A DNA stretch of 64,000 bases from the sequence record OP617745.1; one strand, given 5' to 3'. Of the stretch, positions 180 to 61,357 are shown in pieces. Position 1 is the first letter of the stretch. The number at the start of each line of letters is the position of its first letter. The notes below the pieces were generated by a model, which ran no database searches, had not been told where the DNA came from, and saw nothing but the letters and a program-made list of their open reading frames with translations. Position numbers and translations under genes: made by a program.

Positions 180-1040
180 ATGAAATTATATTTTTTATTT
201 TCTTTTGCTGAAGATATGTATGGATTTGCAGAAGTTGCAGAAAGTGATGGAATCTCATCACATACCAGGCATCAAAAACACCCACATGAGTTTTATAATA
301 ATTTATTCATGTTTATGCAATATAAAATTTTCTCATCTGAATTTGATAATTTAGATCACCCATGGGAATTACCTTTAATTGATATTCCAGACGAATACGT
401 ATTTCAGTTCATGTTAATGGGTCTGGAAGACTATGACTTAGTTGTTTATAACTACAGAACTAAACGCATTATGCTTGGAACTCACGATAGTTCCATTGTA
501 TATGTTTCAAGTACCAATGATGAGTTAGCGTCTGATGAAGGTAATTATAGAAAATCTTATGGTTATATAGAAAATGATAATGATTTTATTTTAGATTTTC
601 GTGTATCAGAAGAAGAAAGAAGAAAAAGAGAAACTTATCAAGTGGAGTTAAAACCAGATAATGGTTATAATGAAATTTTGGAAGTACTTAAACCATACTA
701 CCTTGATATTGTTTATAAGAAATATAAACGCCTGCTAAATCATCTTAGCGAAAAAGAACCAATTGGTTTTGAAACCAATTCATTACGTAATAGCATCATA
801 TTTCCACCTAGAGTAATGAAATATGGTGAAGTTTCTAAACACAAGATGAAACTATATCCCGATGATATTGAAGTTCTATATCATTCGTGGTTGAATAATG
901 ATGAACTATATGTAGAAAATAAAAAGTTAATGCGTATAAGTAATAATGATGATAGATTGCTACAAGCGTGGTATAATGATTCATATTCTGCATTTACTGA
1001 CAGTAATTCTGAGTATTGGAAGAACACAGGACAAAAATAA
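180..1040 (+). CDS. Hypothetical protein (286 aa)
   Basis: Long ORF between two terminators; no motif recognised. Confidence 0.75.
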   Translation: MKLYFLFSFAEDMYGFAEVAESDGISSHTRHQKHPHEFYNNLFMFMQYKIFSSEFDNLDHPWELPLIDIPDEYVFQFMLMGLEDYDLVVYNYRTKRIMLGTHDSSIVYVSSTNDELASDEGNYRKSYGYIENDNDFILDFRVSEEERRKRETYQVELKPDNGYNEILEVLKPYYLDIVYKKYKRLLNHLSEKEPIGFETNSLRNSIIFPPRVMKYGEVSKHKMKLYPDDIEVLYHSWLNNDELYVENKKLMRISNNDDRLLQAWYNDSYSAFTDSNSEYWKNTGQK

Positions 1041-1043
1041 ACC

Positions 1044-1071
1044 AAGGACGGCGTAAAAACCGTCCTTTTTT
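1044..1071 (+). terminator. Rho-independent terminator
   Basis: AAGGACGG-cgtaaaaa-CCGTCCTT then T-run directly after the stop codon. Confidence 0.8.
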
Positions 1072-1119
1072 AATACATAAATATCTGAACGAAAAATAGA
1101 TTTAAGATATAATGTTTAT

Positions 1120-1740
1120 AATTACAAGGATGTTGGATGCACAGGATGTGCATACACTAAAAACCTGATCCACTCGAAACAAGTAGAGGGCAGATGAGTA
1201 TACCAACAATACGCCGTGTAGAGGATACCCGTTTAGGCGAGTCGACACGTTAAAGGGCAAAGGTAGCACGATTGCCCCAATCTCTCAGGAGATTGATAGG
1301 ACGCGAATCCAGTTAAGTCTGGACATTAAGTGTAAAAGGGAGATTATTTTCTTTTAGATATTTTGGAAATAATCACAGTATTGAATTGCTTGAATAGTTC
1401 GGTACTGAAGTGCAAGTATGTTTAAACTTGTGACCGTTGCATGTGACTGCGATAAGGGGAAACCGGGCAACCCGCCTCTGCCTAAATAAATTGAATTTAT
1501 TAGAATTCGCAATTCAAGGAATTTCGACAGCTACGAGCTTCAAGGCTTAGCTTTTTTATTTCTCTTCCCCTCCCTGTGGGGGGATGAAAATATCTCGTGC
1601 AAACGCCTTCAAGTATTGAAATTCACGAAGTGAATTGAAATTACTTGTTCTGTAGTCGAACGACAGTGAGACGTGAGAACAAGTAATTTCTGCATGTATC
1701 AACGAAGTGCAAACGGAGTTGATACATAGCACTTTAAAAC
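1120..1740 (+). ncRNA. Candidate large structured non-coding RNA or structured cis-element
   Basis: No ORF in the track over ~740 bp; much higher GC than the flanks; many stems (ATGCACA/TGTGCAT, CGTGT/ACACG, GGGCAA/TTGCCC, CAATCTC/GAGATTG, TCCAG/CTGGA, GAAATTACTTGTTCT/AGAACAAGTAATTTC, ATGTATCAAC/GTTGATACAT); TATAAT at ~1108. Confidence 0.55.
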
Positions 1741-1782
1741 ATTATTGAATTCAATAATTAATATTATTATGGTTTTAAAGAA

Positions 1783-2379
1783 ATGAATTTAGAAGAACAG
1801 AAGAAAATCGCTTCAAGAAAACAAAAGAAAGGGATTGATATTAAGTACTACAATACTGATTTTGATTTAGTACTAAATCCAGATACCACATTTAGTGGAT
1901 ATGTAGTAAGAACAGAAAAAAATACATTGTCAAATATTAAAGAATATGAAAATGGAAAAGAGATTGGAATCATTTCATTTAGACCTACACAAACCCCCAC
2001 CATAGATGTTGTTCGTTATAAAAGCTATTATGAAGAACGATACGTAAATGGAAATCTTTCTTTGCAATTCAATATAACATGTGATTCATTATTCGGTGAA
2101 TATATAAAATATGATCAAAATGGTGATATTTTAATGAGATATTACTATAATAATAATGTTAATTGTACTGAAGAAATCATGGATTTTATTGGATTTAATG
2201 GTACAATTGAAGAGTTTAAATATTATACATTTAAAGAAGATGAAGAATTTAATATTTTAATGCGTTATGGGAGTCACTTTAAATTATTAAAAGAACAAGA
2301 AAAAAAACCTCAGTACTTTGACGGTTTATTTGAGAGGTTATATAAAAAAAATAGGGAAATAAATGAGAAAAGGAAGTAA
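1783..2379 (+). CDS. Hypothetical protein (198 aa)
   Basis: ORF with short Y..NG/Y.ENG beta-repeat-like segments; function unknown. Confidence 0.75.
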   Translation: MNLEEQKKIASRKQKKGIDIKYYNTDFDLVLNPDTTFSGYVVRTEKNTLSNIKEYENGKEIGIISFRPTQTPTIDVVRYKSYYEERYVNGNLSLQFNITCDSLFGEYIKYDQNGDILMRYYYNNNVNCTEEIMDFIGFNGTIEEFKYYTFKEDEEFNILMRYGSHFKLLKEQEKKPQYFDGLFERLYKKNREINEKRK

Positions 2380-3020: not shown

Positions 3021-3539
3021 ATGGAAGAAGAAAAGAAAGATAAACATGCCGTACATTTTACAGGTGGTCATGATATATGGACTACTCCACTTGATTTTTT
3101 TAAGAAATTAGATGATGTTTGGCATTTTACATTAGATAGTGCTTGTGTAAAAGAAACTGCGTTATGCTCTAAGTACTATACACCAGAAACTGATGGTTTA
3201 TCTCAGGATTGGGGGAACGAAATTGTATGGTGTAATTGTCCTTACAGTGATATAAAAACTTGGTTATCTAAGTGTGCAGATGCGTATAAAAAAGGTGCTA
3301 CCGTACTGATATTAGTTCCTGCTCGTACCGAGACTATTGCATTTCAAAATTATGCTATGCCAATTGCTGATTGTATTACCTTTATTAAAGGTAGATTAAA
3401 ATTTGGTGATCCTGCTAATCCAGAACGTAAAACAACTAGTGCACCGTTCCCATCATGTCTAATAGTACTGGATAAGAATCTAACACAAGCGAAAATAGAT
3501 TGCCTAAAATCTTTAGGAAACACTATGGTTAACATATGA
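3021..3539 (+). CDS. Phage Dam-type DNA N6-adenine methyltransferase
   Basis: W.TP..FF, FTLD.AC, DGLSQDW, motif IV variant NCPY, LVPART, FIKGRLKF, SAPFPS. Confidence 0.85.
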   Translation: MEEEKKDKHAVHFTGGHDIWTTPLDFFKKLDDVWHFTLDSACVKETALCSKYYTPETDGLSQDWGNEIVWCNCPYSDIKTWLSKCADAYKKGATVLILVPARTETIAFQNYAMPIADCITFIKGRLKFGDPANPERKTTSAPFPSCLIVLDKNLTQAKIDCLKSLGNTMVNI

Positions 3540-4090
3540 ATAAATGTATAATTACTTTTGGTAGAATAAATCCAATTCATTTAGGTCATGGGATTTTATT
3601 CAATAAAGTACAAGATATTAGTACTGAATTAAATGCAGATTTTCGAATTTATCTCAGTACTACACAAGATCCAAAGAAAAATCCACTTCCACCTAATCTA
3701 AAACAATATTACACTTCAAATTTTTATCCAAACATTAAAGATGTATTGAGTACTGAAAGTAATGTAATTAATATTATGCAAGATTTGGATTCTCAGTACA
3801 GTGATATTATTTTTGTTTGTGGATCAGATCGAATAAATTCCTTTAAAAAAGCACTTGACAGTGCCAATGGAAAATTATATAATTTCGATTCAATAGAAGT
3901 AATTCAGGCTGGGATTGAAAGAGAATGTAGCAAATATAGTAGTACTGCAATGCGTTCATATGCACTTGGTGGCGATTATAAATCTTTCAGTACCTTTTTA
4001 CCTGGCAAAGATGTTTATTTAAAAGAACAACTATTTGAAGACGTACAGAGATACATGAGAGATGGGTATAATGGTAGCAAAAGGAAGTAA
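3536..4090 (+). CDS. Cytidylyltransferase-like (HxGH) nucleotidyltransferase
   Basis: TFGRINPIHLGH, VCGSDR, SSTAMR motifs. Confidence 0.8.
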   Translation: MNKCIITFGRINPIHLGHGILFNKVQDISTELNADFRIYLSTTQDPKKNPLPPNLKQYYTSNFYPNIKDVLSTESNVINIMQDLDSQYSDIIFVCGSDRINSFKKALDSANGKLYNFDSIEVIQAGIERECSKYSSTAMRSYALGGDYKSFSTFLPGKDVYLKEQLFEDVQRYMRDGYNGSKRK

Positions 4091-8308: not shown

Positions 8309-9037
8309 ATGATAGATAATTTAGCATTTGCATCCGAAATGGCTAATCAGTTGAACATGAGTAATTTTCAGAGTCTTACACCAGTGATGGCGGAATATGC
8401 TGTTGCTCATGCCACCTGTGGTGAACAAGTTGGATCAGCAAATTTATTAGCTGATGTATTCAGTACTGTACAAAGTACCCAATACAGTGTTAAAATGTAT
8501 AGGGATAAGTTTGTACAGTTGTATATGCTTGATGTAATAAAAGAAGAACCAGAATGGACTGATTTTATTATTGAACGTAGGATTAGTGGTGTTTCTAATC
8601 CAGATAAAGATGCAGTACAAGTATTTGATGAAATACTTCAAGATGTATATAGTAATGAACAAAAAAGTCTAAATCAATACAATGTACGTTCTACCAAGAC
8701 AGTGCTCGTGGGATTTGATGAAGATGAAGAATATTACTATTTTCGTTGTACTGAAGTAGATTTTAAATACGAAACTCCCAGTACAGTTAAAGTTAAAGAA
8801 TTTACTGAAAAGAGTAAAAACTTCAAAAAACATTCTTCTAATATTAGTAATATAGTTGGTTATAATAAAGATGGTATTGACATATATCAATGGGTACACC
8901 CAAATAACTCAACTTATACCAGATGTTTAAAGAAACGTTATAATTTAAAACAAGAAGAATCATTTTATTTTAAGATAAAGAAGCATTCCTATCAACGACC
9001 TGATGAATCAGTGTTACTTGGTATGATTTACTTCTGA
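8309..9037 (+). CDS. Hypothetical protein (242 aa)
   Basis: AAGGAG RBS, own promoter and terminator. Confidence 0.8.
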   Translation: MIDNLAFASEMANQLNMSNFQSLTPVMAEYAVAHATCGEQVGSANLLADVFSTVQSTQYSVKMYRDKFVQLYMLDVIKEEPEWTDFIIERRISGVSNPDKDAVQVFDEILQDVYSNEQKSLNQYNVRSTKTVLVGFDEDEEYYYFRCTEVDFKYETPSTVKVKEFTEKSKNFKKHSSNISNIVGYNKDGIDIYQWVHPNNSTYTRCLKKRYNLKQEESFYFKIKKHSYQRPDESVLLGMIYF

Positions 9038-18744: not shown

Positions 18745-19945
18745 TAAATTATACGTAGCACGTTCATATGCTGGAACAGATAAAATAAATGGAAGTATAA
18801 TCGATGCAACAAAAGATCATACTAAAGCATATCAGGATAAAAAATCCAGAGTAGATCAACGCCACCGACATAATACACTGGCTTCACTTGAACTGGATAA
18901 TGTCCCAACAAAGGGGTTCAGCGTAGTCAAACAATATAGTTATGTCAGCCGTGAATGTTTTTTTTCTATTCATCACCCAAGAGGTTTTGAATTTAGTATT
19001 TCAGTACAAAATATGATTGATTTGATTGCTAACAATAATATCATCAATGGTTCATTTGTTGATGAAATGTACTTCGATGATAAATTACAACTAATCAACA
19101 GTAATACTGAAGCGTTTGAAAAAATGAAAAAACGCGAAGAAATCAAAGAGAAGAACAAAAATACAAAAGAAAATCTTAAATGTGGTAGTGGTTTTGTTTA
19201 TCTGAAAAATGAATTCTATTACTGTGGTAAAGTTCATGCAATTAGTGTTCATGCAAACAAAGATTATGCATTAACTGATAAAAGTCGTTCATATGATTTA
19301 GTATATGATATTGGCAAGAAACTCTATTCTTTGTGTAATGATTTGAGTAAGTACCAAATTGAACAAAGAGCACTTCTTAATACAAAAACTGATTTAGAAA
19401 CAGAAGTACAGAAAGCAAATACATATTTTCAAAGTACAGTCAAAAAAGAATATGCACCTCTTTCCGACCAAAGAGAACCAGTACTAATTCATACCAAATC
19501 ATTCAAGAAATCCGACTTACGTATTCAGTACAATGATATTTCTTATTCAGAAATGTCAAACGGTGTAAATTATTTTTGTTCTAATTTATTATACTTAGCA
19601 GAATATAATAATAACACATATAGAGTGTTCTTTGGTCTTAATAAAAACTATAAGCCAGGTGTATACCGACATTATAGTAATGATTATGATATAATCAATT
19701 CTGGTAATTTTGAGATTTACTGTGCATACCCATGTACTGTATCAGAAAATACATTAGAAATGGATGTTGACATTAATAGTCATTATTCTTTTGCTATGTG
19801 GGGTGCATATAAATCACCATTCTATCCACCATCCAAGCGTTATGACGCATATAGTACCAGTTATAAAAACAAAAAAGAATTAGTTCATCTTGAACCATCG
19901 AAAACGACGCTAAAAGTTGGTCATTATTATCTACAAGGAAAGTAA
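18731..19945 (+). CDS. Hypothetical protein (404 aa)
   Basis: Long ORF; LDNVPTKGF...HPRGFEFSISVQN recalled from large-phage hypotheticals. Confidence 0.75.
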   Translation: MSIPSKLYVARSYAGTDKINGSIIDATKDHTKAYQDKKSRVDQRHRHNTLASLELDNVPTKGFSVVKQYSYVSRECFFSIHHPRGFEFSISVQNMIDLIANNNIINGSFVDEMYFDDKLQLINSNTEAFEKMKKREEIKEKNKNTKENLKCGSGFVYLKNEFYYCGKVHAISVHANKDYALTDKSRSYDLVYDIGKKLYSLCNDLSKYQIEQRALLNTKTDLETEVQKANTYFQSTVKKEYAPLSDQREPVLIHTKSFKKSDLRIQYNDISYSEMSNGVNYFCSNLLYLAEYNNNTYRVFFGLNKNYKPGVYRHYSNDYDIINSGNFEIYCAYPCTVSENTLEMDVDINSHYSFAMWGAYKSPFYPPSKRYDAYSTSYKNKKELVHLEPSKTTLKVGHYYLQGK

Positions 19946-47373: not shown

Positions 47374-47809
47374 AGATGACTTAATAAATGGGGAGGGAGT
47401 TAGATGCTCCCTTTTTGTTTCGGGTTGTTCAATGGGTTGTAAAAATTGCTACAATGAAAAAGCATGGGATTATAGAAGCGGTACTGAATTCGGTACTGAA
47501 CAAGTTGAACTTATACTAAACGAATTATCTAAATCATATATATCAGGATTATCATTACTTGGTGGTGATCCACTTGCTCCAAAAAATTGTAGTACTGTAA
47601 TCGAACTATGTAAAGTTGTTAAAGAAAAATACCCAGACAAAACCATTTGGTGTTGGTCTGGGTATACATTAGAAGAGATACAAAACAATCATGCAAAAGA
47701 AATATTGCAGTACTGTGATGTATTGGTTGATGGTAAATTCATAAATGAATTAAAAGATTTATCATTACCATATAGGGGATCATCAAATCAAAGAATAATA
47801 AAATTTTAA
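47351..47809 (+). CDS. nrdG: Anaerobic RNR activating enzyme (radical SAM)
   Basis: NGEGVRCSLFVSGC...C..C, GLSLLGGDPL, WCWSGY, RGSSNQR. Confidence 0.95.
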   Translation: MNYQTIIKDDLINGEGVRCSLFVSGCSMGCKNCYNEKAWDYRSGTEFGTEQVELILNELSKSYISGLSLLGGDPLAPKNCSTVIELCKVVKEKYPDKTIWCWSGYTLEEIQNNHAKEILQYCDVLVDGKFINELKDLSLPYRGSSNQRIIKF

Positions 47810-47842
47810 TTATAAATTATTTTCTATATTATAGAACAATTT

Positions 47843-48676
47843 TCAAAACATTATCATTTTCTTAATCTCTCCATATAGAACCAGATGGCAATCTAGTTGG
47901 ACATGCTCACATGGTTCTTGAATAAAGTGTGTAAACGTTCTTCTAAGCGAGCCAGTAAAACTACTAAAATCAGCTTTTACCTGACTGGATATTCGGTAGT
48001 ACCCTGGGGGTATTAATAGTGTCGCTGAAGAATATCGGGTGTTACTTCCCAATTCAAACGTAACGTATGGACCTATCGCATCGAACGCTGCTTGAAACGC
48101 CGGAGACCAATCCCACGTGTTTGGATCTCCTGCGTCCGGTTTGTCAGTAATAAGATCTCTGAACTCCCAGACAGAGACTTTTATTGAACTTAATGCTGTA
48201 GCAACGGAATTGGCTGTAGATATAGCCGCAGCTAATGGGTTACGCTTTGAATTAACCATATAGCTTCCCAGACCATCTTCTGATGAAGCCAGATCTGCAA
48301 TTTTAACTCTATCTTGTAATGCTTGCTCTACCGTAACTCCTTGAGATGTACCAATTAGAGACGCACCATATCCAATTTGATTACTTTGTAACACAGATTT
48401 TGATAACAATAGCCCTTGAGTTAACGAAAATGTCCCAATACTTGTGACTAAAGTTAAAGTCTCTCCTGAAACACTCCAAGATATAGTTGTACCAGTAGCT
48501 GTTCCGCGATACCAACATGTTTCAGTACTTTCATCATATAAAACAATATATGGATTTATAAGTACTGAAGTAGATAGATATCCTACCGAAGATTTTTCAA
48601 TACCAAAGATTCTAGCTATAGATTCCTTATTAGTTTCTTTTGATACTGAGCCTTTTGGCTGAGTTAATTTATTCAT
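47843..48676 (-). pseudogene. Truncated tailspike/tail fibre (N-terminal adaptor intact, catalytic domain missing)
   Basis: Same N-terminus as 51889-54048; stops about 45 aa after the IPPGYYRI beta-helix entry with an unrelated-looking tail. Confidence 0.6.
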
Positions 48677-48708
48677 TATTATAATTTCTCCAAATATAAT
48701 TATATTAA

Positions 48709-48716
48709 TATTTATA
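48709..48716 (-). promoter_or_regulatory. T4-type late promoter TATAAATA
   Basis: TATAAATA on the minus strand ~33 nt upstream of the ATG; same context at 50983, 54077 and 58119. Confidence 0.7.
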
Positions 48717-48749
48717 ATATAAAAACACTATATCTATACATTTTTTATA

Positions 48750-50954
48750 TTAATAAGTACTATTATAACTTGCACCAGTTACAGTGATATAAAGAACTCC
48801 TGCACCTGAAGAAGTTATTGTTGGTGTTGTACTATCCGGCCAACTCACAGTAAATGTATTTGATCCGGCATAAACTTGATCTAAAACTGTTATTGTTGGA
48901 GTAGATGTTGCATTAAGTTTTATCAGACGACAGGACATTGCCCCAATAACAGAAGAGATATACAGTGTATATGCCCCTGCCAGACCTGCTTGATCTGGAT
49001 AAAGAGAATGACTGCCTGCTGCTGATACCTGAACACTATACGATGCAATTCCAGTAGATGTAGGTTTAGGTAATCTCTCAGAATAAGAACTTTCATAAGT
49101 AAGTTGACTACCTGCTACACAAGCTGCATATTCAAAACTTAAAGTAGATCCAGAATCGCCAACATTGATAGAAATGTCGTGATAAAGGTCATCAGTTGTA
49201 GCCACCACTGTACAGTAGTATTTTTGACCTCTCTTAACCCATGCACCAGAGTACGTAGTGACTGTACCTCCTGCGGATGTACAAGTGACTGTAACCCCAG
49301 AAGAAGTACCTACTGAATTCGCTGTAAATATATACGTTCTGGTAGATGCATACTGTCTAAAATTTGTCCCAAAAGAGGCTGCCGTTCCTGTGGAAGTTAC
49401 TGTACGCCCTGCATTAGCATTTACTGAACAATTCGTAAAATTCCAACCACGAGGAATACTGTTTGTAGGATGACGATACGCCCAGCCAGGATTAGGTACA
49501 AGGTTTTCTCTTATTGGTTCTGAAGTATATGATCTTGTAGAGTTAATTACCTTACCTGTTATAATACAAGAAGTACCTGCCCTATTATCAGTAGGTTCTG
49601 GACAATGTACACTAGTGGTGTCTATGACATATCCAGATGACGTTTGAAAATTAATTAGATAAGGAGGTTTAGAAGTAACTATAGACGATGAAGATTGGAA
49701 ATCACAATCCGTTACAAATACTTTTGAAATTAAATTGTTAGTAGTTTTTCTGAGAATAATATAACCAGAGTCACCATCAGCAACAGTAGTTCCAGCGTTT
49801 GACGCATTATCACCAATAACTTTAATACTGTTTAATGTAATAACAGAATCACCAGCAGTGTCATTATCAACAACACAACCAGTCTGGTCAAAAAGTCCCA
49901 ACTGTACAGTCAATATTCCAAGATAAGATGTTCCTGATTTGTTAACAATTGCTCGCTTATGGCAAAATGTATGGCAATCGAAAACATTACTTCCATCATG
50001 ATCTGTCAGGGTCAGGAATACTCTGTTATCATCTACTAAACATCTCCACATAGCTTCGGCAGGACGAACCACGTTCGGGTTAGCATGACAAGACTCTATG
50101 CGGTTAATATCACGAGACCCAGTAATTTGGAAGTCACGTTCCATGCAGAAGCCGTAGTTCTGGAACAGGAAATGCGAACCACCAGTCGAGACTACAAAAT
50201 TTTTCATCCCATAATATACACAGTTAGTTACATTTAAGAAACTAGTGGAAGAAATAGCAGTTCCGTAATTTAGAATATTTGCCTTACTCGTCGCAGACCA
50301 ATTTTGTAAAGGAGCACCAAATACTATACCTGTGAATGTACAAAGTTGACCACAATTAAACCAAATATTATCCCCTGTGCTACCGTACCATAAAAAGGCA
50401 GAGTCTAGGGGGTTAGCCGCTCTTTCCGCAGGTGTACTTCCAGATAAAGAAGAAGTTCCACCACCTTGTTGAAATTTATTAGATCTAGAGCCTTCAAAAG
50501 TAATCTGTGGTGGAATAGTATGTGTATTTTTAATTTTGTATATTTTAGAAAAAAGTTTAATAACAGGATAGCCATTATTCACTGCATATGATGTTGCTGC
50601 GTCAATTGCATCATCCCAATATTCATCACCATCTTTATGAAATTGTTCAAGAGTAATATATGTATTAATTTCATCCAAGCTTGTTTTTTTATTTAAATTA
50701 TAAGTACCTAAATCAGTAACAAGAGACATTGTGTTTTCTGAAATACTCCATGAAATTGGTGTACCGGTGGCGGCACCAACATTCCAACATGTAGTTGTTT
50801 TTGAATCATATAATACCAGTGTAGTACTAGAGATTTCATGTTTATTAGACAAATATTGAATATTTTCTGGAGAAATTCCATATATTAATGAAATACTAGT
50901 TTTTGTTGTATGAATCGCAGACGATCCTTTTGCTTGTGTTAAATCGGTTGACAT
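48750..50954 (-). CDS. Tailspike/putative polysaccharide depolymerase
   Basis: Conserved N-terminal adaptor (LTQAKGS), DDAIDAA..., beta-helix-like repeats, C-terminal NL.PNP carbohydrate-binding-like domain. Confidence 0.8.
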   Translation of the reverse strand: MSTDLTQAKGSSAIHTTKTSISLIYGISPENIQYLSNKHEISSTTLVLYDSKTTTCWNVGAATGTPISWSISENTMSLVTDLGTYNLNKKTSLDEINTYITLEQFHKDGDEYWDDAIDAATSYAVNNGYPVIKLFSKIYKIKNTHTIPPQITFEGSRSNKFQQGGGTSSLSGSTPAERAANPLDSAFLWYGSTGDNIWFNCGQLCTFTGIVFGAPLQNWSATSKANILNYGTAISSTSFLNVTNCVYYGMKNFVVSTGGSHFLFQNYGFCMERDFQITGSRDINRIESCHANPNVVRPAEAMWRCLVDDNRVFLTLTDHDGSNVFDCHTFCHKRAIVNKSGTSYLGILTVQLGLFDQTGCVVDNDTAGDSVITLNSIKVIGDNASNAGTTVADGDSGYIILRKTTNNLISKVFVTDCDFQSSSSIVTSKPPYLINFQTSSGYVIDTTSVHCPEPTDNRAGTSCIITGKVINSTRSYTSEPIRENLVPNPGWAYRHPTNSIPRGWNFTNCSVNANAGRTVTSTGTAASFGTNFRQYASTRTYIFTANSVGTSSGVTVTCTSAGGTVTTYSGAWVKRGQKYYCTVVATTDDLYHDISINVGDSGSTLSFEYAACVAGSQLTYESSYSERLPKPTSTGIASYSVQVSAAGSHSLYPDQAGLAGAYTLYISSVIGAMSCRLIKLNATSTPTITVLDQVYAGSNTFTVSWPDSTTPTITSSGAGVLYITVTGASYNSTY

Positions 50955-50982
50955 TATAATTCTCCAAATATAATTATAATAA

Positions 50983-51020
50983 TATTTATAAAGAAAAAGC
51001 CTCCATTTGGAGGCTTTTTA
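50983..51020 (-). promoter_or_regulatory. Terminator hairpin plus late promoter TATAAATA
   Basis: AAAAAGCCTCC-attt-GGAGGCTTTTT (50994-51019) next to TATAAATA (50983-50990, minus). Confidence 0.75.
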
Positions 51021-51199
51021 TTTTTTAAATTATATGATAAGTATATGTTATAACAATTTCTAATGTTGTTAAACTTGGTTAAAATAATAAAGAGAAAGTT
51101 GGTTGATGTTTCTGAATATGATGTAGGTGCTTCTGTAAGCAATGCTTGCTGGAATCACACTCGTAGCGATGCAACTATTGATGAGTGATTTAAGCTTCT

Positions 51200-51516
51200 A
51201 GTTAAGTTCTACTTCTGTCTGAAAAAGTAGTGGAGGCCAATCGTAATTGTAGAGCTGTTCTATCAAATGGAGAGAAGTCCAAAACTCAACGTAAGCCGAA
51301 AGAATCCAATCCAGTGTCTGCTGTAGACTTCAAACCTTTGCTACTTACAGTAACCAAGACATTAGGATGCTTGCTATAGTCAGTAAAGGTTTTAGGTTCA
51401 CCCCCAATACCATTGACGATCACATCATAGCCATTATTCTTAGTGTACTTACTTGTACTAGTCCATTCAGATACCGAAAGCATTCCTAAAAATGCTGTTA
51501 CTTGTTTACTAATCAT
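51200..51516 (-). pseudogene. Decayed lambda-R-like lytic transglycosylase (endolysin)
   Basis: AFLGML..SE...NNGYDVIV...FTDYS.HP..LV...LKSTA matches lambda R; stop at 51286; DFSP.DRTALQL continues in frame after the stop. Confidence 0.75.
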
Positions 51517-51536
51517 AAGAGTAACTCCTATCATAA

Positions 51537-51560
51537 AACCCCGTCCTTTATAGACGGGGG
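51537..51560 (-). terminator. Rho-independent terminator
   Basis: CCCCGTC-tataaag-GACGGGG then TTTT on the minus strand, after the 88-aa ORF. Confidence 0.6.
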
Positions 51561-51611
51561 ATATTCAGATTTCAGAAAATTAGAGGTACTCTACTCCCCA
51601 ATCAGGAAGCA

Positions 51612-51878
51612 TCAACCACTAAAACTGGATTCTAGTGAGGTTTCTGCCTGTACCAGCAGGTTATCTAATCCATCATGGTGGAAGGAATAAGTAATTATCC
51701 CTTCACCAATCCCTTCAGCTTTTACACTGAACTGAACCTCAGCTACCCCTGCTGCAACTGAATTCACAATAATTGCTTCATATGTAACGTTCAGCGTTTC
51801 ACTATTAGATGGTTTAACTATGCCAAGTTCAGGATAGTTTTTAACAACTGAACACTGTTTTGATATTGTAAATGACAT
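51612..51878 (-). CDS. Small tailspike-associated protein
   Basis: MSFTISK...; starts 11 nt after the tailspike stop. Confidence 0.65.
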   Translation of the reverse strand: MSFTISKQCSVVKNYPELGIVKPSNSETLNVTYEAIIVNSVAAGVAEVQFSVKAEGIGEGIITYSFHHDGLDNLLVQAETSLESSFSG

Positions 51879-51888
51879 TTTTTTATCC

Positions 51889-54048
51889 TTACGCGATTGC
51901 ACGCGAGTAAATTTTAGCGATTGTACTACCTTCAGTAACTGAAGAAAAAGTACAGTTATAGTGGTTTAGGATATAAGCAAGGCCAAGCCCGCTTATATTC
52001 GATCCCTGAATTATGTTCATATTTGATAATGAGCATGAATTCAGCGATAGTTTTACTACACCAGCCATCTGAGCAGGAGACACCAGGAACGGTTTATAAG
52101 TGACGTCACTTCCTGATATCGTACAGTTATTAAATGAAACCCCACAGTCACCATAAACATAAACCAGAGCACCAAATGCAATGGCTGCTGCACTTGTTGA
52201 TGAGGATAGCGTTAGAGTAATATTCAAGTTTTTGAATGAAATCCTTCCATCCTTAACCCCAACTCCTGATAGCCAGCCTGAATTTTCACCAATAACCAAA
52301 GTTGGCTTGGTTGTTGTATCACCAATAACCTGAATGTCAAAATTCTGGAAGAAGCGACTATTTGGCTGTAATCCATCTGAGTAGTATTTGGTTGTTGTTA
52401 CCGTATTACCAGCAGCAATATAAATCCTGTTTTTATAATTTGGCTGGCAGCGAAGCAATGCCTCCTGCAATGTTTTAACTGGGTAGCTTGAGCTATAGCC
52501 GTTATAACTGTCATCACCGGATGCCGAGATATAGATATCGCAATAACCAGAAAACTGAGAGTAACAGTTAAAAATAACTTTGCTAGGATATGCAATTTTC
52601 ATCCTGGTTCGCATGTCACCAGCATGTTTTACAACCAACTTACTAGAGCCAGGGCAGTTATATGGGTCAACAGTCTGGCTAAAGTAGTTAGTATTGGTCA
52701 TGTCAATACTTGCTGAGTTTGCAGCAGACCCTGACAAAAACACCATGCGTGTAGTAGCTGCTGCCCCTTTGTTATTGTAAAAATAACCAGGGGTCATACT
52801 CATTACGCACTCCATGAGGGCGTAGCATTCTTCCTCGATATTCTCAAAGTAAGTTCCGTGCTCGGAACCGCCCTGGCATCTGTGAAGCCTGTAGCCATTT
52901 TGAGAGTTTTCTAGTGTGCAATCCTTAAAATGTGGGGATGACCATGAACCAGCCACACAAGCTGTCCAGGCTTGTCTTGTTGAATACCCATAGAATTCAG
53001 GGAAATCAGTAAACCACGGAAGTGGGTTTGGCCCCTGGGTAGTCTGGAAATAGCAGTTATCAAACATCCATGTCGTAACATTATTTCTCAGTGTCAGAGC
53101 AATTGTTGCAGTCCTGAAAATGCAATCCCTGAAAGCACCATTCCACGTACAGGTGAGGTTCGCCCCAACGGCTGCTCGGGATGTAATGCGTGCACAGATG
53201 CTATTGAGTACGGCACCATGTGTGAGGCGGAAATTAAAAATCCCCTTCAGGGAAGTATTGGCACCAGCAACAACGGAGAAATTTTCCAACAGTAACCCAG
53301 GGCAGCGAGTGATTTCTCGCCTGTCGCTCGCACTGGCAGAATATGAGTCAATCTTTGCTGCGTGCGTACCTGTTTGATCAAGGTTTAGTGATTCAAATGC
53401 ATAACCATCCTGCATGGAAAAATCTGGTATGAACTTTGTGAAATTATTCGTTGGATCACCCAAATAAGATTGTGCAATTCCACTCATTCGGAGATAAGGC
53501 GGAATTATCATAGTTCTGGTGAAACGATACCTCCCCGGTAGCATCAAATAATATTTAACAGTTGCCCCTCGAGCATCAGTATCAGAAACATTTCCCTGCC
53601 ACACGAAATCAACACAAGCATTCATTGCAGCTTGCAATGCATCAGAATCGTCAGCAACACCATCTCCCACGGCTCCAAACATCTCCGGTGTGACCCACTT
53701 GATAGCATCGCCGACAAAGCCACCTTGTGTAAGACCAACCATTCCGGCACCATCACTTGAAGCTAGGTTTTGGCGAAGGTTAGCTAATTCTAGCTTATAT
53801 ACTCCTGATGAAGTAACCAAAGACAACCCAGTCTCCAATACAGTCCAACTAGTAGGCGTGCCTGAAGCTTCACCTCTAAACCAACAAGTTTGTGTGTTTT
53901 CATCATATAAAATTGTATATAAGTCTACTTCTACTGAAGTAGATAGATATCCCACCGAAGATTTTTCAATTCCAAAGATTCTAGCTATCGATTCCTTATT
54001 CGTTTCTCTCGTAACTGAGCCTTTTGGCTGAATTAACATATTTGCCAT
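51889..54048 (-). CDS. Tailspike/putative depolymerase with a GC-rich passenger region
   Basis: Adaptor QPKGSV..ETNKESIARIFG; WVTPEMFGAVGDGVADDSDALQAA pectate-lyase-3-like entry; beta-helix. Confidence 0.85.
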   Translation of the reverse strand: MANMLIQPKGSVTRETNKESIARIFGIEKSSVGYLSTSVEVDLYTILYDENTQTCWFRGEASGTPTSWTVLETGLSLVTSSGVYKLELANLRQNLASSDGAGMVGLTQGGFVGDAIKWVTPEMFGAVGDGVADDSDALQAAMNACVDFVWQGNVSDTDARGATVKYYLMLPGRYRFTRTMIIPPYLRMSGIAQSYLGDPTNNFTKFIPDFSMQDGYAFESLNLDQTGTHAAKIDSYSASASDRREITRCPGLLLENFSVVAGANTSLKGIFNFRLTHGAVLNSICARITSRAAVGANLTCTWNGAFRDCIFRTATIALTLRNNVTTWMFDNCYFQTTQGPNPLPWFTDFPEFYGYSTRQAWTACVAGSWSSPHFKDCTLENSQNGYRLHRCQGGSEHGTYFENIEEECYALMECVMSMTPGYFYNNKGAAATTRMVFLSGSAANSASIDMTNTNYFSQTVDPYNCPGSSKLVVKHAGDMRTRMKIAYPSKVIFNCYSQFSGYCDIYISASGDDSYNGYSSSYPVKTLQEALLRCQPNYKNRIYIAAGNTVTTTKYYSDGLQPNSRFFQNFDIQVIGDTTTKPTLVIGENSGWLSGVGVKDGRISFKNLNITLTLSSSTSAAAIAFGALVYVYGDCGVSFNNCTISGSDVTYKPFLVSPAQMAGVVKLSLNSCSLSNMNIIQGSNISGLGLAYILNHYNCTFSSVTEGSTIAKIYSRAIA

Positions 54049-54076
54049 TTATAATTCTCCAAATAAATTATAATAA

Positions 54077-54111
54077 TATTTATAATAAAAAGCCCCTGGT
54101 AAGGGGCTTTT
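54077..54111 (-). promoter_or_regulatory. Terminator hairpin plus late promoter TATAAATA
   Basis: AAAAAGCCCCT-ggta-AGGGGCTTTT next to TATAAATA (54077-54084, minus). Confidence 0.75.
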
Positions 54112-54121
54112 GTTGTTTTAT

Positions 54122-57100
54122 TTAAAATACATTAGAAGAAGTTATATCATCTGTAGTATCATACTCAATTTCAATTTGAAACCTACTACCTTTGACGTCG
54201 GACCACAAAAATCTATATGTGCTATCAGTGGATGTTTGTGATTGTAATATAAAATAATAGTTAACAACTGAATTGGAATCGGTAAAAGAACCACATTCAT
54301 ATGCAACCGGATTTATTTTTATTGTCCTAGTAATCGAATTATCATCTGTTATAGTAAAAGTTGTAGAAGTAATAACAATTGGTTTCACAGGCCCATATGT
54401 ATTAAGAGAATAACTTGTGTTACTAGAAATAATAGGTGCATAAATTTTATTAAATCCAATAACAACCGGTTCGGAACCACCAGTTGCTCTATTACTTGCG
54501 TCAAATACAATTTTCATTTTAACACGATTACCAATTCTCTCCATAAAAACACGTTTTGATGGCGTCGTTACTATAGTACTGGAACTACTGGTTGGAATAC
54601 CAGCGTATAATGTCATTTGTGAACTAACATCCTTTTCAAAATATTTCCAATAATATTTAGAATCAACTGTTCCAGTTGAATTTGGAATAAACTTCTGTGG
54701 GGGCGTTTGGTAAACATCAGGTGACATTTGTTCCACAATAACGGATGAACCAGAACCGTTGTCAACAATAGTCCTTCTCATTCGGTTTTTATAACCATTA
54801 TCATTTCTGGCAACAGTTCGGGCGGAACCAAACAAACCCAATGTGTTAACAGGAAATCCATTCATTATAACGACACTACCCTCACCACCCCAATATTCGG
54901 AATAAGTTTTATTGCCAGGCCAGTTGTCAGCACCAGAAGTAACAAAATCATTTGATCCACCAACAACTGTTCCACCATCGCGTGTCAATTTACAACCTTG
55001 TTCAATATAAGCAGTGCCTATAATACAACCAGGAACATTCAACTCACTAGAATCATTATAAGTGGTTAATACAGCGGCTCGGCTACATCCCCATGTTTTT
55101 AATGATAACACTTCATTTAGGATGTGGTAACGATGATATCTACCCATTTGTGACAATGCACGTTTCGAAATTCCCAAAAACGGACTATCAGTATATAAAG
55201 TACTGGTTGACGTTAAATTAGTACCAGTATTAGTACATCTTCCACCATCAGCAGTTCTTTTTGAATTATCATTTTTATAAAAATACGTATTAAAGAAAGT
55301 ATCAATTTTTGAAAATATATCACTACTTCCCCAATAAGTATCATTACTGTATTCAAGAGATTCAATTTTAACAAAATCGCACCATCCAATACAATACACA
55401 TCAGTACCATCAACATAAGGTGGAACACCCTTTCCTGTATTAGAACCACTAATATCATTCCTAGTTAGCCACCAACCACCTATTGTAAAGCCACTTGCAC
55501 AATTTGTCATTCTTATTTTTTTAATAGTTGAGCGATCACCACCCAACCAACTCATTGCAATTCCACAATTATTAAATTGTAATACTCCCCATGTTACTGA
55601 ACCAACTACACCATCAGCAACAATTCCAATAGCCGCATTTTTAATTGTAAAACCGTCAAATTCAATATTTGCAATATCACTATTCATTCTGTTTATAGAA
55701 CCAACTGCGGCTTTATATGTTCCGTCCCAATTCCTAACTCGCAAACAAATACCAATCGTTTGGTTGATATCAACAGTACTTTGATCCCACAAAAAATTTA
55801 ATGAATTACTTGCAATACCCGATGATTTCAAAGAAACACCAGATGGCCAATTTAATCCAACGGCCATTCTGTATTCTGGTTCTGGTGTTAATGTAACTTC
55901 ACCAGTTCTTCTAGTATCGTATGTTCCATCATCAAATGGCATTACAAAATCATAACCCAATGAAGGTTTAATATTATAATTACCACTAAAATATACAGTA
56001 CTAGCACCAATATCTTTCGCTTTCTGTGCCGCTGCCGCGAAGGCGGGACTCCAATCGTTTGGATCGGTTACTAAATTCTTAAATGATTCTACTGTTATAA
56101 TTTTATATAATGCATCTTGTACAGTTCCTGATTGTGACAAATAAACCAGACTTGCACCTTCTCCATCCTCTGTGGACTGTAAATTATCATTAAACTCATT
56201 TAAGTTATTAATATTTTCTTGAACAGTTTTATTGTTTTCAGTACCAATCAATGATGCTCCAGTAGTTGATGACAATATAGTTGTATCAACTTTGTTATTA
56301 AGTGTTTGTTGTAGATCACTACCATCAGGAGTTCCTATTATAGATGTACCAACATTGGATGATAGCGTTGATTTACTAACAAATTGAGAAGATGCATTAT
56401 CATAAGTCAAATATGGATTTGTATTGAAAACCAATTTACCAAGAATTGCAATAAAATTATCACCAGTTTGTAATGCACCATTTAAATTGACGTATTGCCC
56501 ATCAATTGTGTAGTGATTTAAATTTACGCTTTGAAGAATACCATTAATAAAAATAGTAATACTACCAAAATTATACGGAACGAAGATTCTAGTTACATTA
56601 TCAGAGGTTGCAGTATAAGTCCATGTAATAACGTCTTTGTTTGAATCTAATTTATAAAATGGTACGCCGGGTACTGTACCAAGAGTTCCTGTACCAGTCC
56701 ATACAGTACCGTCCACTGGATATAACCAGTACTGGTTCACAGTTGATGTACTACCAACTGTCCACATTTTCAGTGATCTTCGTGGCAATCCAAAAGCTAC
56801 TTCAATACTCGGTAAATGTGGTTGCCATTTTAAATTTATACCTTCATTTTTTAATGAATTTTTTAATTCCTGTAGTTCTTCTGCGGTTGCATAGGAAGTT
56901 AAATCTGCTTTGGTTACTAAATTACTGTTCTGTACTGGAGAGTTATAAACAATAACATGAATATCATCTCCTAATTGTAAAGGAGAACTTAACGTAACTT
57001 CAGTACCGTTTAATATATAAGCACCGCTGTCTGGATTTTGCAAAACACCATTGATAAAAACTTGCAATTCACTAAAATTAAAATAAGGTATATTTAGTTT

Positions 57101-58084
57101 ATTATTCGATTCATCGGTTATGGTACTGGTATAACTGGCATTAACACTATCAATGAATTTTGGATCATTCAATGTAACAAAAACATTATCATTTTCATCC
57201 AAAGACGAAATAAATGATAAAGTTGTGCCTGATACACTATATGCATTATCGTATTGTAAAACACCATTGATATAAACAAGACCATCATCAAACTCACCAG
57301 GTAAAGTAAAATCGGTTTGATCTTGAGATGCAAGAGCAGTAAATGAAACCAAGTCAGTCTCATTACCAAGAACAAGAATATCATCATTTAAATACAATTT
57401 ATCACCAAGAGTGATAGTACTTCCAGAAACAGTATACGAATCTGGATATTGCAAAATACCATTAATAAAAACAAAATTAGTTTTTTTGGTAAATGGTAAC
57501 ACAATAACAGTTTGATCTTCGGTTGCAGTTGCAGTAAATTCTTCATTATCAGTGTTGGTTGTGTCTTCACCAACAACAACATAAATGGTATCACCTGTAC
57601 TTAATTTGGAATTAAATGTTACAGTACCACCAAATGTTTGGTAAGATAAACCTGGATATTGTAGTACACCGTTAACATAGATAATTGCTTTTTTGAAATC
57701 TAGATTAGGAACCGTAAATTGAGTTTGTCCGGCAGCGGCGATAGAACTCCACGTTACTGTAGTTTTGGATGAATCAAAGATAGTAACCCAATCCGAATCG
57801 TTAACATCGTTAACGACTCTCATCATCAATTTCACTGGTGCTGAATCAGTGTCTTTCCAATCGCCAGTATTAAAAGAAAACATCCCAGCGATATTTTCTT
57901 GTTTACCAAAATTTGTTACTAAAGTATTACTTGCTAAATCTGTAGTGCTTTCATCAATTTCATTTATTGTGAATTTTCCTTTAGGCATAATTTTAGAATC
58001 TGATAACTTTTCATTATCAAATATCACTCCACCTTTAAGGGATGCATCAACTGCTGATAGTGATCCTTTAAATTTAAATGCCAT
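54122..58084 (-). CDS. Large tail fibre/tailspike with five ~55-aa repeats and C-terminal beta-helix
   Basis: Five FING.LQ...Y...G..L...GD repeats, W.PHLP..EVA.GLP domain, DWSPAFAAA entry into the beta-helix. Confidence 0.85.
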
Positions 58085-58118
58085 TTCATAATCCTTTTAA
58101 AATTAAAAATTTATAATG

Positions 58119-58155
58119 TATTTATAACGAAAAAGCCCCCACAAGGAGGCTTTTT
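58119..58155 (-). promoter_or_regulatory. Terminator hairpin plus late promoter TATAAATA
   Basis: AAAAAGCC...GGCTTTTT (58130-58155) next to TATAAATA (58119-58126, minus). Confidence 0.75.
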
Positions 58156-58156
58156 C

Positions 58157-60832: not shown

Positions 60833-61357
60833 ATTAAACCTCATCTAAAAGTTTATGTATAGTATTATTTATGATGCTCATTAGAACTAAATACATGAAA
60901 GCAAATGCAAACTAAGAGGTTTTTGACATGTCTTTAAGTAATTTAAGCTCAAGTAATAGTAATGGGGCATTTCTTGATTATGGAGAATTCAGAAGTGGTG
61001 TTTATATCCAAACATCAAATCAGATTTTGTACTTCACTGATGAAAATGGAAATAAAGTAGGTTATCAGTGGAAGGGACTTTTGCCTCACACAACAACAAC
61101 AAATGATCCAAATACTGATGGTGGTATTTCAGATACTGCTTGGTGTAGTATTGTTGGTAGTGGTTTTATTGAAAAATTATCAAAAGAAGGAATTGATTTA
61201 AGTTGGAAAGCACACTTACCAACAGTTGAAGTTTCTTACAATTTACCACATAAATCACTAAAAATATGGGAAGAAGGTACGATTAGTACTGATAATGATT
61301 ATTGGTTATACCCAGGGGATGGTACCGTATGGAATGGGGTTGGTGTTCTTGGTAGTA
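60403..61357. repeat. Perfect 28-bp inverted repeat (60403-60430 / 61330-61357)
   Basis: TGGAATGGGGTTGGTGTTCTTGGTAGTA and its reverse complement. Confidence 0.9.
60620..61137. repeat. Perfect 32-bp inverted repeat (60620-60651 / 61106-61137)
   Basis: ATCCAAATACTGATGGTGGTATTTCAGATACT and its reverse complement. Confidence 0.9.

Follow-up and report, generated by a model that had tools for sequence, protein, structure and literature searches.

What function might be served by the longest gap without an open reading frame (ORF) in a 64,000-nucleotide (nt) stretch of jumbo phage DNA? The stretch, hereafter the window, is part of record OP617745.1, the 357.7-kb genome of Klebsiella phage KP13-7, a RaK2-like jumbo phage of the genus Alcyoneusvirus; window position 1040 corresponds to position 187,040 of the record, and the element in question lies at record positions 187,040-187,790. 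A reading made earlier from the letters alone, called here the sequence-only reading, had proposed for this gap either a large ornate non-coding RNA of the size of ROOL and GOLLD or a structured element of a replication origin. As judged from its sequence and that of its homologues, window 1085-1760 forms a non-coding module complete in itself, in which a conserved promoter is followed by approximately 600 nt predicted to fold on the + strand. Both proposed functions remain the leading ones, and copy number, spacing, a common strand and carriage by bacterial islands shift the weight toward the origin type; the sequence-only reading missed the existence of a multi-copy family and its occurrence in bacteria. 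The reading we prefer, with a probability of roughly 0.4, is that the module would serve as a cis-acting, RNA-primed origin of replication.

Homologues and Covariation

A blastn search located the element in 72 phage records, all of RaK2-like jumbo phages (Alcyoneus-, Asterius-, Mimas-, Eneladusvirus and relatives) with hosts in the genera Klebsiella, Escherichia, Salmonella, Yersinia, Erwinia, Pectobacterium, Cronobacter, Serratia, and Xanthomonas, and at two to five places per record. The hosts of family members include E. coli K-12 (phage Sharanji). Ten homologous gaps were found to align over approximately 650 nt with an invariant -10 region. A first pattern used on IMG/VR (GACCGTT N18-34 AACCCGC) was too loose, returning chance matches, and a 44-nt degenerate motif (window 1432-1475) was used in its place; the fixed letters of this motif are invariant by construction, and the covarying positions had been left free. 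It identified 59 loci in IMG/VR, 74 in metagenomes, and four in bacterial genomes, an independent 3' motif yielded extra copies, and a profile hidden Markov model indicated that nearly all of them are full-length. The nhmmer profile of 55 copies matches the window at 1150-1752 (+) with an E-value of 1.6e-87, and this is the sole copy in the window.

A diverged subfamily, variant B, was recognized on metagenome contigs with a guanine-plus-cytosine (GC) fraction of 0.42-0.46 (L239, L243, L249, L267, L271, L281, L282, and L292). It retains the promoter, AAAGGGAG, the GACCGUUGC...GCAACCCGC core, and GGGGGGAUGGAAAU. On contig L243, the element adjoins a gene for a T4 baseplate protein, with a T4-like portal gene nearby; this placement echoes the position between endonuclease VII and baseplate hub genes of one orthologue group in phages GAP32 and 121Q.

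That the family folds as RNA was evident from a MAFFT alignment of 55 copies (A2), which was fitted to no structure and to which the helix numbers given below refer. RNAalifold predicted 53 pairs from it, 36 of them with compensatory double changes, and in a 92-pair structure compensatory changes were found in 51 of the 92 pairs. The cells of this structure were paired in 92.7% of cases, compared to 78.4% in shuffled alignments (none of 500 reached the observed value) and 37-40% when the partners were slid by one to three columns. Likewise, the covariation score was 0.42, as opposed to 0.165 (shuffled) and 0.07-0.09 (slid), and double-change cells numbered 720, as opposed to 203 and 63-121, respectively. 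The sequence-only reading had counted many stems and had named a collection of homologues with a covariation analysis as one means of checking them; with 55 copies in hand, the element is conserved, covaries strongly, and has most of the stems ascribed to it. Folding of the + strand with RNAfold gave -191 kcal/mol (z = -5.8 relative to dinucleotide shuffles), the corresponding z for the - strand being -6.5. Pairs of the G-U type outnumber A-C pairs 2.6-fold on the + strand (353 and 137, respectively), and this excess, together with the promoter, points to the + strand as the functional one.

Placement in Phage Genomes

All copies of a genome were found on one strand in each of 12 genomes. The common strand is kept even by the approximately ten copies designated type A, which are located between the genes for endonuclease VII and the baseplate hub, both of which are read in the opposite direction. 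Considering 56 copies, the downstream gene is on the same strand in 46 and on the opposite strand in 10, the latter including one whole orthologue group. In phages GAP32, CBB, and Serratia BF, as well as in two metagenomic genomes, five copies are spaced 52-84 kb apart, an evenness for which P is 0.0004-0.005 as judged from the minimum gap and 0.0002-0.002 as judged from the coefficient of variation. The paralogues within a genome share approximately 55-65% identity, and each position forms its own orthologue cluster across genera; with each position thus keeping its own orthologue, no paralogue appears to be redundant.

Both KP13-7 and RaK2 possess two copies. The second of KP13-7 is at 97,609-98,354 of the record, on the same strand and 89.4 kb upstream. 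The window copy has a positional orthologue in Klebsiella phage fENko-Kae01, given that the RNA copy of that phage is found in the same gene neighborhood. Two genes just beyond the element, at window 3021-3539 and 3536-4090 (+), correspond in position to those of a methyltransferase and a putative nucleotidyltransferase annotated in fENko-Kae01, and the gene at 3536-4090 (+) carries an HxGH-type motif.

Occurrence in Bacterial Defence Islands

Full-length copies were also found in four bacterial genome records, including the complete chromosome of Serratia fonticola GTA-SR07, and the islands that carry them recur on metagenome contigs and in further assemblies, with Enterobacterales as the hosts. 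The islands are integrative, 8-12 kb in size and of low GC, and they lie beside normal chromosome, with thiM and its thiamine pyrophosphate riboswitch, rof-tilS, miaB, and ytfL-cysQ as neighbors. Among the loci are L296 2496-13206 (Silvania hatchlandensis JAMGZK010000045.1), L297-L299 3287-11750, L218 61-4700 (Serratia fonticola NZ_CP183218.1), and L289. In all five island contexts, 0.4-2.4 kb separate the element from the island edge, and its transcription runs into the island. It is the sole DNA that the islands and the jumbo phages have in common.

The island core encodes an integrase, a CI-like S24 repressor, a Cro-like protein, LprI, a small resolvase, and a protein of 233 or 286 amino acids without matches; the integrase that accompanies this core is of the tyrosine type in L289 and a large serine recombinase in L216/L296. 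The cargo is swappable and comprises DarT with an ADP-ribosylglycohydrolase and a UvrD/GajB-like helicase, a ThsB-like TIR protein with a STAND NTPase (PDC-S60), or PDC-S73. Neither a replication initiator nor a capsid gene was recognizable in the core, comparison of the island DNA to plasmids gave no match, and the metagenome contigs lacked terminal repeats of the kind expected for circular episomal forms. The small resolvase suggests an episomal or concatemeric phase. The promoter (TGAAAC-N17-TATACT) is kept in two of the three island types. In two types, the element and cI are read toward each other, and the cro-X-LprI genes farther on have the orientation of the element; the L217 and L218 copies are convergent with their neighbors. 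At the island end in Serratia fonticola there are two copies of rof (L218 4775-5038 and 5227-5490) that are 97.7% identical, and this duplication may have been made by integration into rof. We know of no precedent for the genomic arrangement of the family or for its link to defence islands.

The Gap, the Promoter and the Predicted Ends of the RNA

The gap (1041-1782, 742 nt) separates two + strand hypothetical genes (180-1040 and 1783-2379), and it proved to be, as the sequence-only reading had maintained, the longest in the window when gaps are defined by the lack of any ORF of at least 80 amino acids. Its enrichment in GC was likewise recognized correctly: the fraction is 0.38, compared to no more than 0.31 in the eight other gaps, so that it is the only GC-raised one of the nine; in 200-nt windows, values of 0.40-0.44 within the element contrast with 0.27-0.31 in the flanks. 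The stretch is without an annotated feature in the records of KP13-7, RCIP0023, RaK2, and K64-1 (AB897757), and small hypothetical ORFs are annotated over it in two others (NC_027399 of K64-1 and Muenster).

An intrinsic terminator of the upstream gene (coding sequence 180-1040), placed by the sequence-only reading at 1044-1071, is present as a hairpin at 1044-1067 (+) with a stem of 8-9 bp, five G-C pairs, and a T run; it sets the element apart from upstream transcription. The TATAAT noted near 1108 was found to be the -10 (1108-1113) of a promoter at 1085-1113 (+), with CTGAAC as its -35 (1085-1090) and a 17-nt spacer, from which transcription is predicted to start near A1120. All homologues with sufficient upstream DNA have TG(A/G)AAC or GGGACA, 17 nt, and (TGn)TATAAT. 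Within the window, only one to three matches to the motif are found on the two strands together; apart from that of the element, matches to its TG(G/A)AAC-N15-18-TAnAAT class are restricted to 18772-18801 (+) and 8656-8683 (+). A promoter class with a -35 of TGAAACG has been reported ahead of the DNA-synthesis genes of phage CBB (PMC5259590), and the promoter of the element fits this class.

The predicted structured RNA spans 1120-1735 (+), approximately 615 nt between putative ends. A shorter RNA of about 435 nt is possible, ending at the U run 1552-1557, where a weak terminator-like hairpin (1529-1552, -7.4 kcal/mol) together with U6 (1552-1557) makes up a feature at 1529-1557 (+) that is shared by some homologues only; the corresponding columns of A2, approximately 660-690, are filled in some copies only. 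At the 3' edge, an 18-bp A+T palindrome (ATTATTGAATTCAATAAT, 1741-1758) precedes the next gene (1783-2379) and could be either the terminator stem of the RNA or an easily melted stretch.

Fold of the Element

The module is predicted to contain at least 14 helices and at least one pseudoknot, separated by strongly conserved unpaired stretches, of which GAUGAG, AAACCCG, CGGCAAUGCGGC, AUAAAG, GAUAGA, AAGGGAG, GGGGGGAUGAAAAU, and CAAAYC are near-invariant. Near the 5' end, helix P1 (1131-1208; UGUUGG 1131-1136 with CCAACA 1203-1208) corresponds to helix 1 of A2, where seven of eight pairs have changed on both sides with up to six pair types; its counterparts in other copies are CUGAUUGA/UCAAUCAG, CAGUGUGG/CCACAC, and GACAACGG/CCGUUG. 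It encloses a variable hairpin at 1137-1153 and the hairpin that follows (1165-1193; CUG..CC.CUC with GAG.GG..CAG), which has a conserved GAAA(C)AAGUA loop, is directly followed by a conserved AUGAGUA (1194-1200), and is compensatory in seven of eight pairs of helix 2 (pair types such as AU25 CG11 GC10 and CG30 UA20). Helix 5 (1215-1249; CGUGU 1215-1219 with ACACG 1245-1249) encloses a conserved GA(G/A)GA(U/A)ACCCG and is paired in 100% of cells, with compensatory changes in four of its five pairs (AU30 UA13 CG2 GC2; GC42 CG9; UA35 AU20). The hairpin at 1255-1277, preceded by a conserved (A)UAAAG and formed by GGGCAA (1255-1260) and UUGCCC (1272-1277), is helix 7, all seven pairs of which are compensatory (GC38 UA8 CG5; AU26 GC19 CG8).

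The stems TGTTGG/CCAACA, CGTGT/ACACG, and GGGCAA/TTGCCC of the sequence-only reading thus coincide with helices that carry compensatory changes, and its TCCAG/CTGGA corresponds to the covarying helix 9 of A2. Three others differ between copies. The ATGCACA/TGTGCAT hairpin (1137-1153) varies in sequence, with other copies having a different hairpin there; the GATTATTT/AAATAATC hairpin (1343-1376) is equally variable, with differing sequence at the same place elsewhere; and CAATCTC/GAGATTG (1278-1295) is confined to the Alcyoneusvirus copies.

Beyond these, a single-stranded AAGGGAG (1336-1342) is invariant in the 55 copies and is kept in variant B. It is followed by a hairpin at 1376-1407 (drawn from RNAfold; helix 11, six of seven pairs compensatory), in whose loop and 3' part CUUGAAU (1389-1395) could alternatively pair with AUUCAAG (1512-1518), and by a UGCAA/UUGUG hairpin at 1411-1432 (helix 12, four of five pairs compensatory). 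The core junction (1432-1511) holds GACCGUU (1432-1438), a hairpin at 1482-1503, and the pseudoknot helix GUUGC (1436-1440)/GCAAC (1467-1471), which is paired in 55 of 55 copies with one perfectly correlated pair (CG29/UA26) and another of GC51/AU3/GU1. Its helices UGCGA (1448-1452)/UCGCA (1507-1511) and AGGGG (1455-1459)/CCUCU (1475-1479), helices 14 and 15 of A2, have broken cells in none of the 55 copies and three to five pair types.

Toward the 3' end, RNAfold places a C-rich/G6 hairpin at 1563-1591 (G run 1578-1583), followed by a conserved AUGAAAAU. Its GGGG and flanking letters are invariant, and the helix (helix 19) varies solely by G-U wobble. There follow a hairpin with a 15-bp stem and a conserved CGAACGA in its loop (1637-1690, -26.4 kcal/mol) and a last one (1691-1731, -17.5 kcal/mol) that covaries (UA20/AU19 and AU20/UA19). 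A GAUG/CGUC helix in this part (A2 720-724/746-749), invariant in most copies and lost in the window and in variant B, was not counted. Direct repeats of CUUCAAG at 1538-1544 and 1607-1613, read from the alignments (compare also 1513-1518), change in step between at least four lineages, being CGUCAG, UGUCAG, GUGUCA, or ACGAAG elsewhere. Their joint change suggests that both pair alternatively with one common partner, and they may form an alternative-pairing switch around the terminator-like and G6 hairpins. Peripheral hairpin modules, such as those of the ACAAUAUAGAUCCGUCC type, are found at either of two positions or twice.

Relation to Known RNA Families and to Coding Sequence

The sequence-only reading had been unable to assign the element to a named family, and none can be named now: cmscan with Rfam 15 over the whole window gave no match at gathering scores, nor did the four bacterial loci yield one. 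At E < 10, window 1000-1850 returned chance matches only, with neither ROOL nor GOLLD among them; these two were equally absent at E < 10 from five other copies, among which no chance match recurred. Taking both thresholds together, the window and nine other loci (four of them bacterial) returned only terminator-like small RNA or chance matches, none recurring within the element. ARAGORN found no tRNA or transfer-messenger RNA (tmRNA) gene in the window, and the only tmRNA-related match of Rfam was a chance one to mt-tmRNA (17.4 bits compared to a gathering score of 65). RNase P RNA was rejected for want of an Rfam match even at E < 10, and a group I intron for want of an Rfam match and on account of the intergenic place and separate promoter of the element; lying within no host gene, it is not an intron. 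Loose resemblances of short strings to RNase P (J11/12), group I introns (R/S elements), the hammerhead, and tmRNA were borne out by no model. A description of the element was sought in Rfam, in the searched literature, and in the RaK2, CBB, and UE-S1 papers, and none was found. The element is thus a new family within a known kind, the large structured RNAs of bacteria and phages.

It is also non-coding, as had been claimed. A protein gene disguised by frameshifts, the alternative considered at that time, is at odds with the approximately 14.5 stops in each + frame over 620 nt, with a median longest ATG-initiated ORF of 46 amino acids among the 55 copies, and with alignment gap runs whose lengths are mostly not multiples of three.

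Proposed Function in Replication

The preferred reading, an RNA-primed origin, would involve the following. RNA polymerase would start at a promoter of the TGAAAC type, which is found ahead of the DNA-synthesis genes of CBB as well; the folded transcript, with the invariant G6 that follows a C-rich/U-rich stretch, would remain hybridized to its template as an R-loop; and the R-loop would be processed to a primer and a helicase-loading site for the T4-like replisome of the phage. Forks would then travel in the direction of transcription, and co-oriented origins every 52-84 kb would permit fast copying of a 350-kb genome. For an island with an inward-pointing copy at its edge, infection by a jumbo phage would bring amplification and perhaps packaging.

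This reading is preferred because an origin acting in cis would account at once for how the copies are spaced, why they share a strand, why each position retains its paralogue, and why the island copies lie at the edge and point inward. It is further supported by the apparent class of the promoter, in parallel with oriF and oriG of T4, and it fits islands that lack recognizable replication genes and yet possess a resolvase, in parallel with ColE1. The invariant G6 with the C/U-rich stretch preceding it is counted in its favor, and one mark of a ColE1-type origin is a pre-primer RNA several hundred nt long that has its own promoter and keeps its fold, with which the promoter and the covariation seen here agree. 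An antisense counterpart to the RNA I of that system was not apparent: no promoter-like site was found on the - strand in 900-2000, and the A run of a - strand terminator-like site (1187-1169) in the window is not conserved in other copies.

Several observations weigh against an origin. The papers searched contained no transcript, R-loop, or replication results for RaK2-like phages, and none was found that addresses how replication of their 350-kb genomes starts. So much invariant unpaired sequence, together with a pseudoknot and modules that move, is as expected of a ribozyme or of the RNA of a ribonucleoprotein (RNP) and exceeds the needs of known primers; T4 origins need no RNA fold. The genomes with five copies are syntenic, and their even spacing therefore amounts to approximately a single evolutionary observation, and Alcyoneusvirus has just two copies, 89 kb apart in 358 kb, so that even coverage is evidently not required. 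An analysis of GC skew across the window, which the sequence-only reading had listed as a check for an origin, gave no shift at the element. Neither an RNA I-like antisense gene, iterons, nor a tested unwinding element was found. The 233/286-amino-acid island proteins, which have no matches, could be the initiators. Finally, if the extended -10 promoter were to fire with host polymerase alone, an integrated origin may be harmful unless phage proteins are needed downstream.

A sign change in the skew near 48 kb coincides with - strand genes. The skew is negative over window approximately 47800-60900, where GC is 0.33-0.43, from the start of a long block of - strand ORFs (47843-60844), and this change fits transcription rather than a replication terminus.

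Second in weight, and possible though we would not bet on it, is a large ornate RNA that acts in trans and belongs to a novel class: a ribozyme, an RNP scaffold, a self-assembling particle, or an anti-defence or regulatory RNA, comparable to ROOL, GOLLD, and OLE. The paralogues would be specialized, and the island copies would be a decoy, a counter-measure, or an RNA doing the same job for the island. The size, the many helices, the pseudoknot, and more than 100 near-invariant unpaired nt across very divergent phages are what such an RNA would show, and movable hairpin modules of the kind described above are typical of tertiary-contact modules in large RNAs. The element is also transcriptionally independent in its layout, having a promoter of its own, to which type A copies add a strong terminator, and GOLLD and ROOL are likewise associated with phages. 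However, a trans-acting RNA predicts neither the even spacing (P = 0.0002-0.005) nor the common strand kept against local gene direction nor the retention of a paralogue per position; it leaves the inward-pointing placement at island edges unexplained, and no partner protein gene is consistently adjacent, the flanks differing between copies.

A cis-acting element of transcription, the nascent RNA of which modifies the polymerase in the manner of HK022 put antitermination or serves as a leader or attenuator for a long downstream block, is improbable. In islands, it would cause read-through across cI into the cro operon upon infection by a jumbo phage, consistent with the two types in which the element faces cI and is co-oriented with cro-X-LprI. 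The order of promoter, structured core, and, in many copies, a terminator-like hairpin with a U run (window 1529-1557) would suit such an element, as would the same-strand downstream gene in 46 of 56 copies and the co-varying direct repeats, which could form an alternative-pairing switch. An element of the put type should, however, lie upstream of, and co-oriented with, the genes that it serves, whereas the downstream gene is opposite in 10 of 56 copies; approximately ten type A copies are followed by opposite-strand genes and a bidirectional terminator, and the L217 and L218 island copies converge with their neighbors. Moreover, known antiterminator RNAs are approximately 70-120 nt rather than 600, and the terminator-like hairpin is missing from several orthologue groups.

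It is very unlikely that DNA is the functional form, whether as a structured single-stranded initiation site or as a protein-binding architecture, with the RNA being incidental. The hairpins would form in displaced single-stranded DNA as well, for which the lower z of the - strand (-6.5, compared to -5.8) can be cited, and the positional pattern is compatible with a DNA element; against this, a conserved promoter reads through the entire element in every copy, G-U-type pairs exceed A-C pairs 2.6-fold on the + strand, and, one pair of short repeats aside, neither iterons nor recurring protein-site motifs were observed. That the element is a protein gene in decay or belongs to a known RNA family (group I intron, tmRNA, RNase P, ROOL, GOLLD, or a riboswitch), for which size alone speaks, is hardly credible in view of the stops in every + frame, the gap lengths, the lack of Rfam or ARAGORN matches, and the intergenic place.

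Returning to replication, a broader proposal is made only tentatively: that ornate RNAs of a novel class make up the core of origins regularly spaced on one strand of the 350-kb genomes, or of another machine tethered to the chromosome, and that small CI/Cro-controlled defence islands of Enterobacterales have captured a copy such that an infecting jumbo phage amplifies, activates, or mobilizes the island. If true, the origin and island reading would link a large structured RNA, the architecture of phage genomes, and parasitism by phage satellites or defence islands. Even apart from replication, the sharing of the element suggests a tie between defence islands and jumbo phages that has gone unnoticed, be it hitch-hiking, sensing, or a decoy.

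Comparison with Known Systems

Transcribed ORF-less RNAs of 236-619 nt, termed lncRNAs, have been reported from RNA-seq of PA5oct, a jumbo-phage relative of the RaK2 group (PMC7318152). Its ncRNA004 (619 nt), on the + strand between - strand genes, resembles the element in size and placement. The nhmmer family profile matched the PA5oct lncRNAs (L220 764-999 and 14452-14902; L221 1117-1735) only with E-values of 3.5 and 7.2; hence, they are not homologous and provide no transcript evidence for the family.

The put RNAs of HK022 share with the element a structured RNA proximal to a promoter, and put is active only in cis and in one orientation. They differ in that put-type RNAs are 70-120 nt and approximately ten copies of the element face away from any downstream gene.

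RNA II of ColE1 is a folded primer of 555 nt that requires no Rep protein and is the only replication function encoded by the plasmid. A G-rich segment of the RNA has been implicated in the persistence of the hybrid, forks move only in the direction of transcription, and multimers need to be resolved. The element resembles RNA II of ColE1/pMB1 as a folded RNA of approximately 550-600 nt with its own promoter, and such a system could account for how a small mobile element without an initiator gene of its own replicates. It differs in having no homology and no apparent RNA I-type regulator, and in a fold that is far more conserved and elaborate; the plasmid depends on Pol I, whereas the element resides in phages with a T4-like replisome.

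At oriF(uvsY) and oriG(34) of T4, a middle-mode promoter drives the formation of an R-loop, the transcript of which primes synthesis; oriE has RNAE. Features that the element would share with them are several origins per genome, a related lineage of replisomes, and a promoter putatively of the class found at replication genes. A plasmid with a T4 origin is copied and packaged by T4 upon infection, a parallel to the proposal made for the islands. The copies of the element are homologous to one another and strongly structured; T4 origin transcripts, in contrast, lack both a conserved fold and mutual homology, and they are unevenly spaced.

The closest likeness in form is to ROOL and GOLLD: a length of approximately 600 nt (GOLLD being larger), many conserved helices, pseudoknots, extensive conserved unpaired sequence, and an association with phages or prophages without a fixed neighboring gene. 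The element departs from them in having no match in Rfam 15 and in being multi-copy, co-oriented, regularly spaced, equipped with its own conserved promoter, and present in defence islands. Large RNAs with a highly conserved structure are seldom encountered, and almost all classes known so far have led to new biology; the comparative support for this family is unusually clean. Unlike ROOL, GOLLD, and OLE, this family offers in its genomic pattern a handle on function, namely whether replication starts at its copies.

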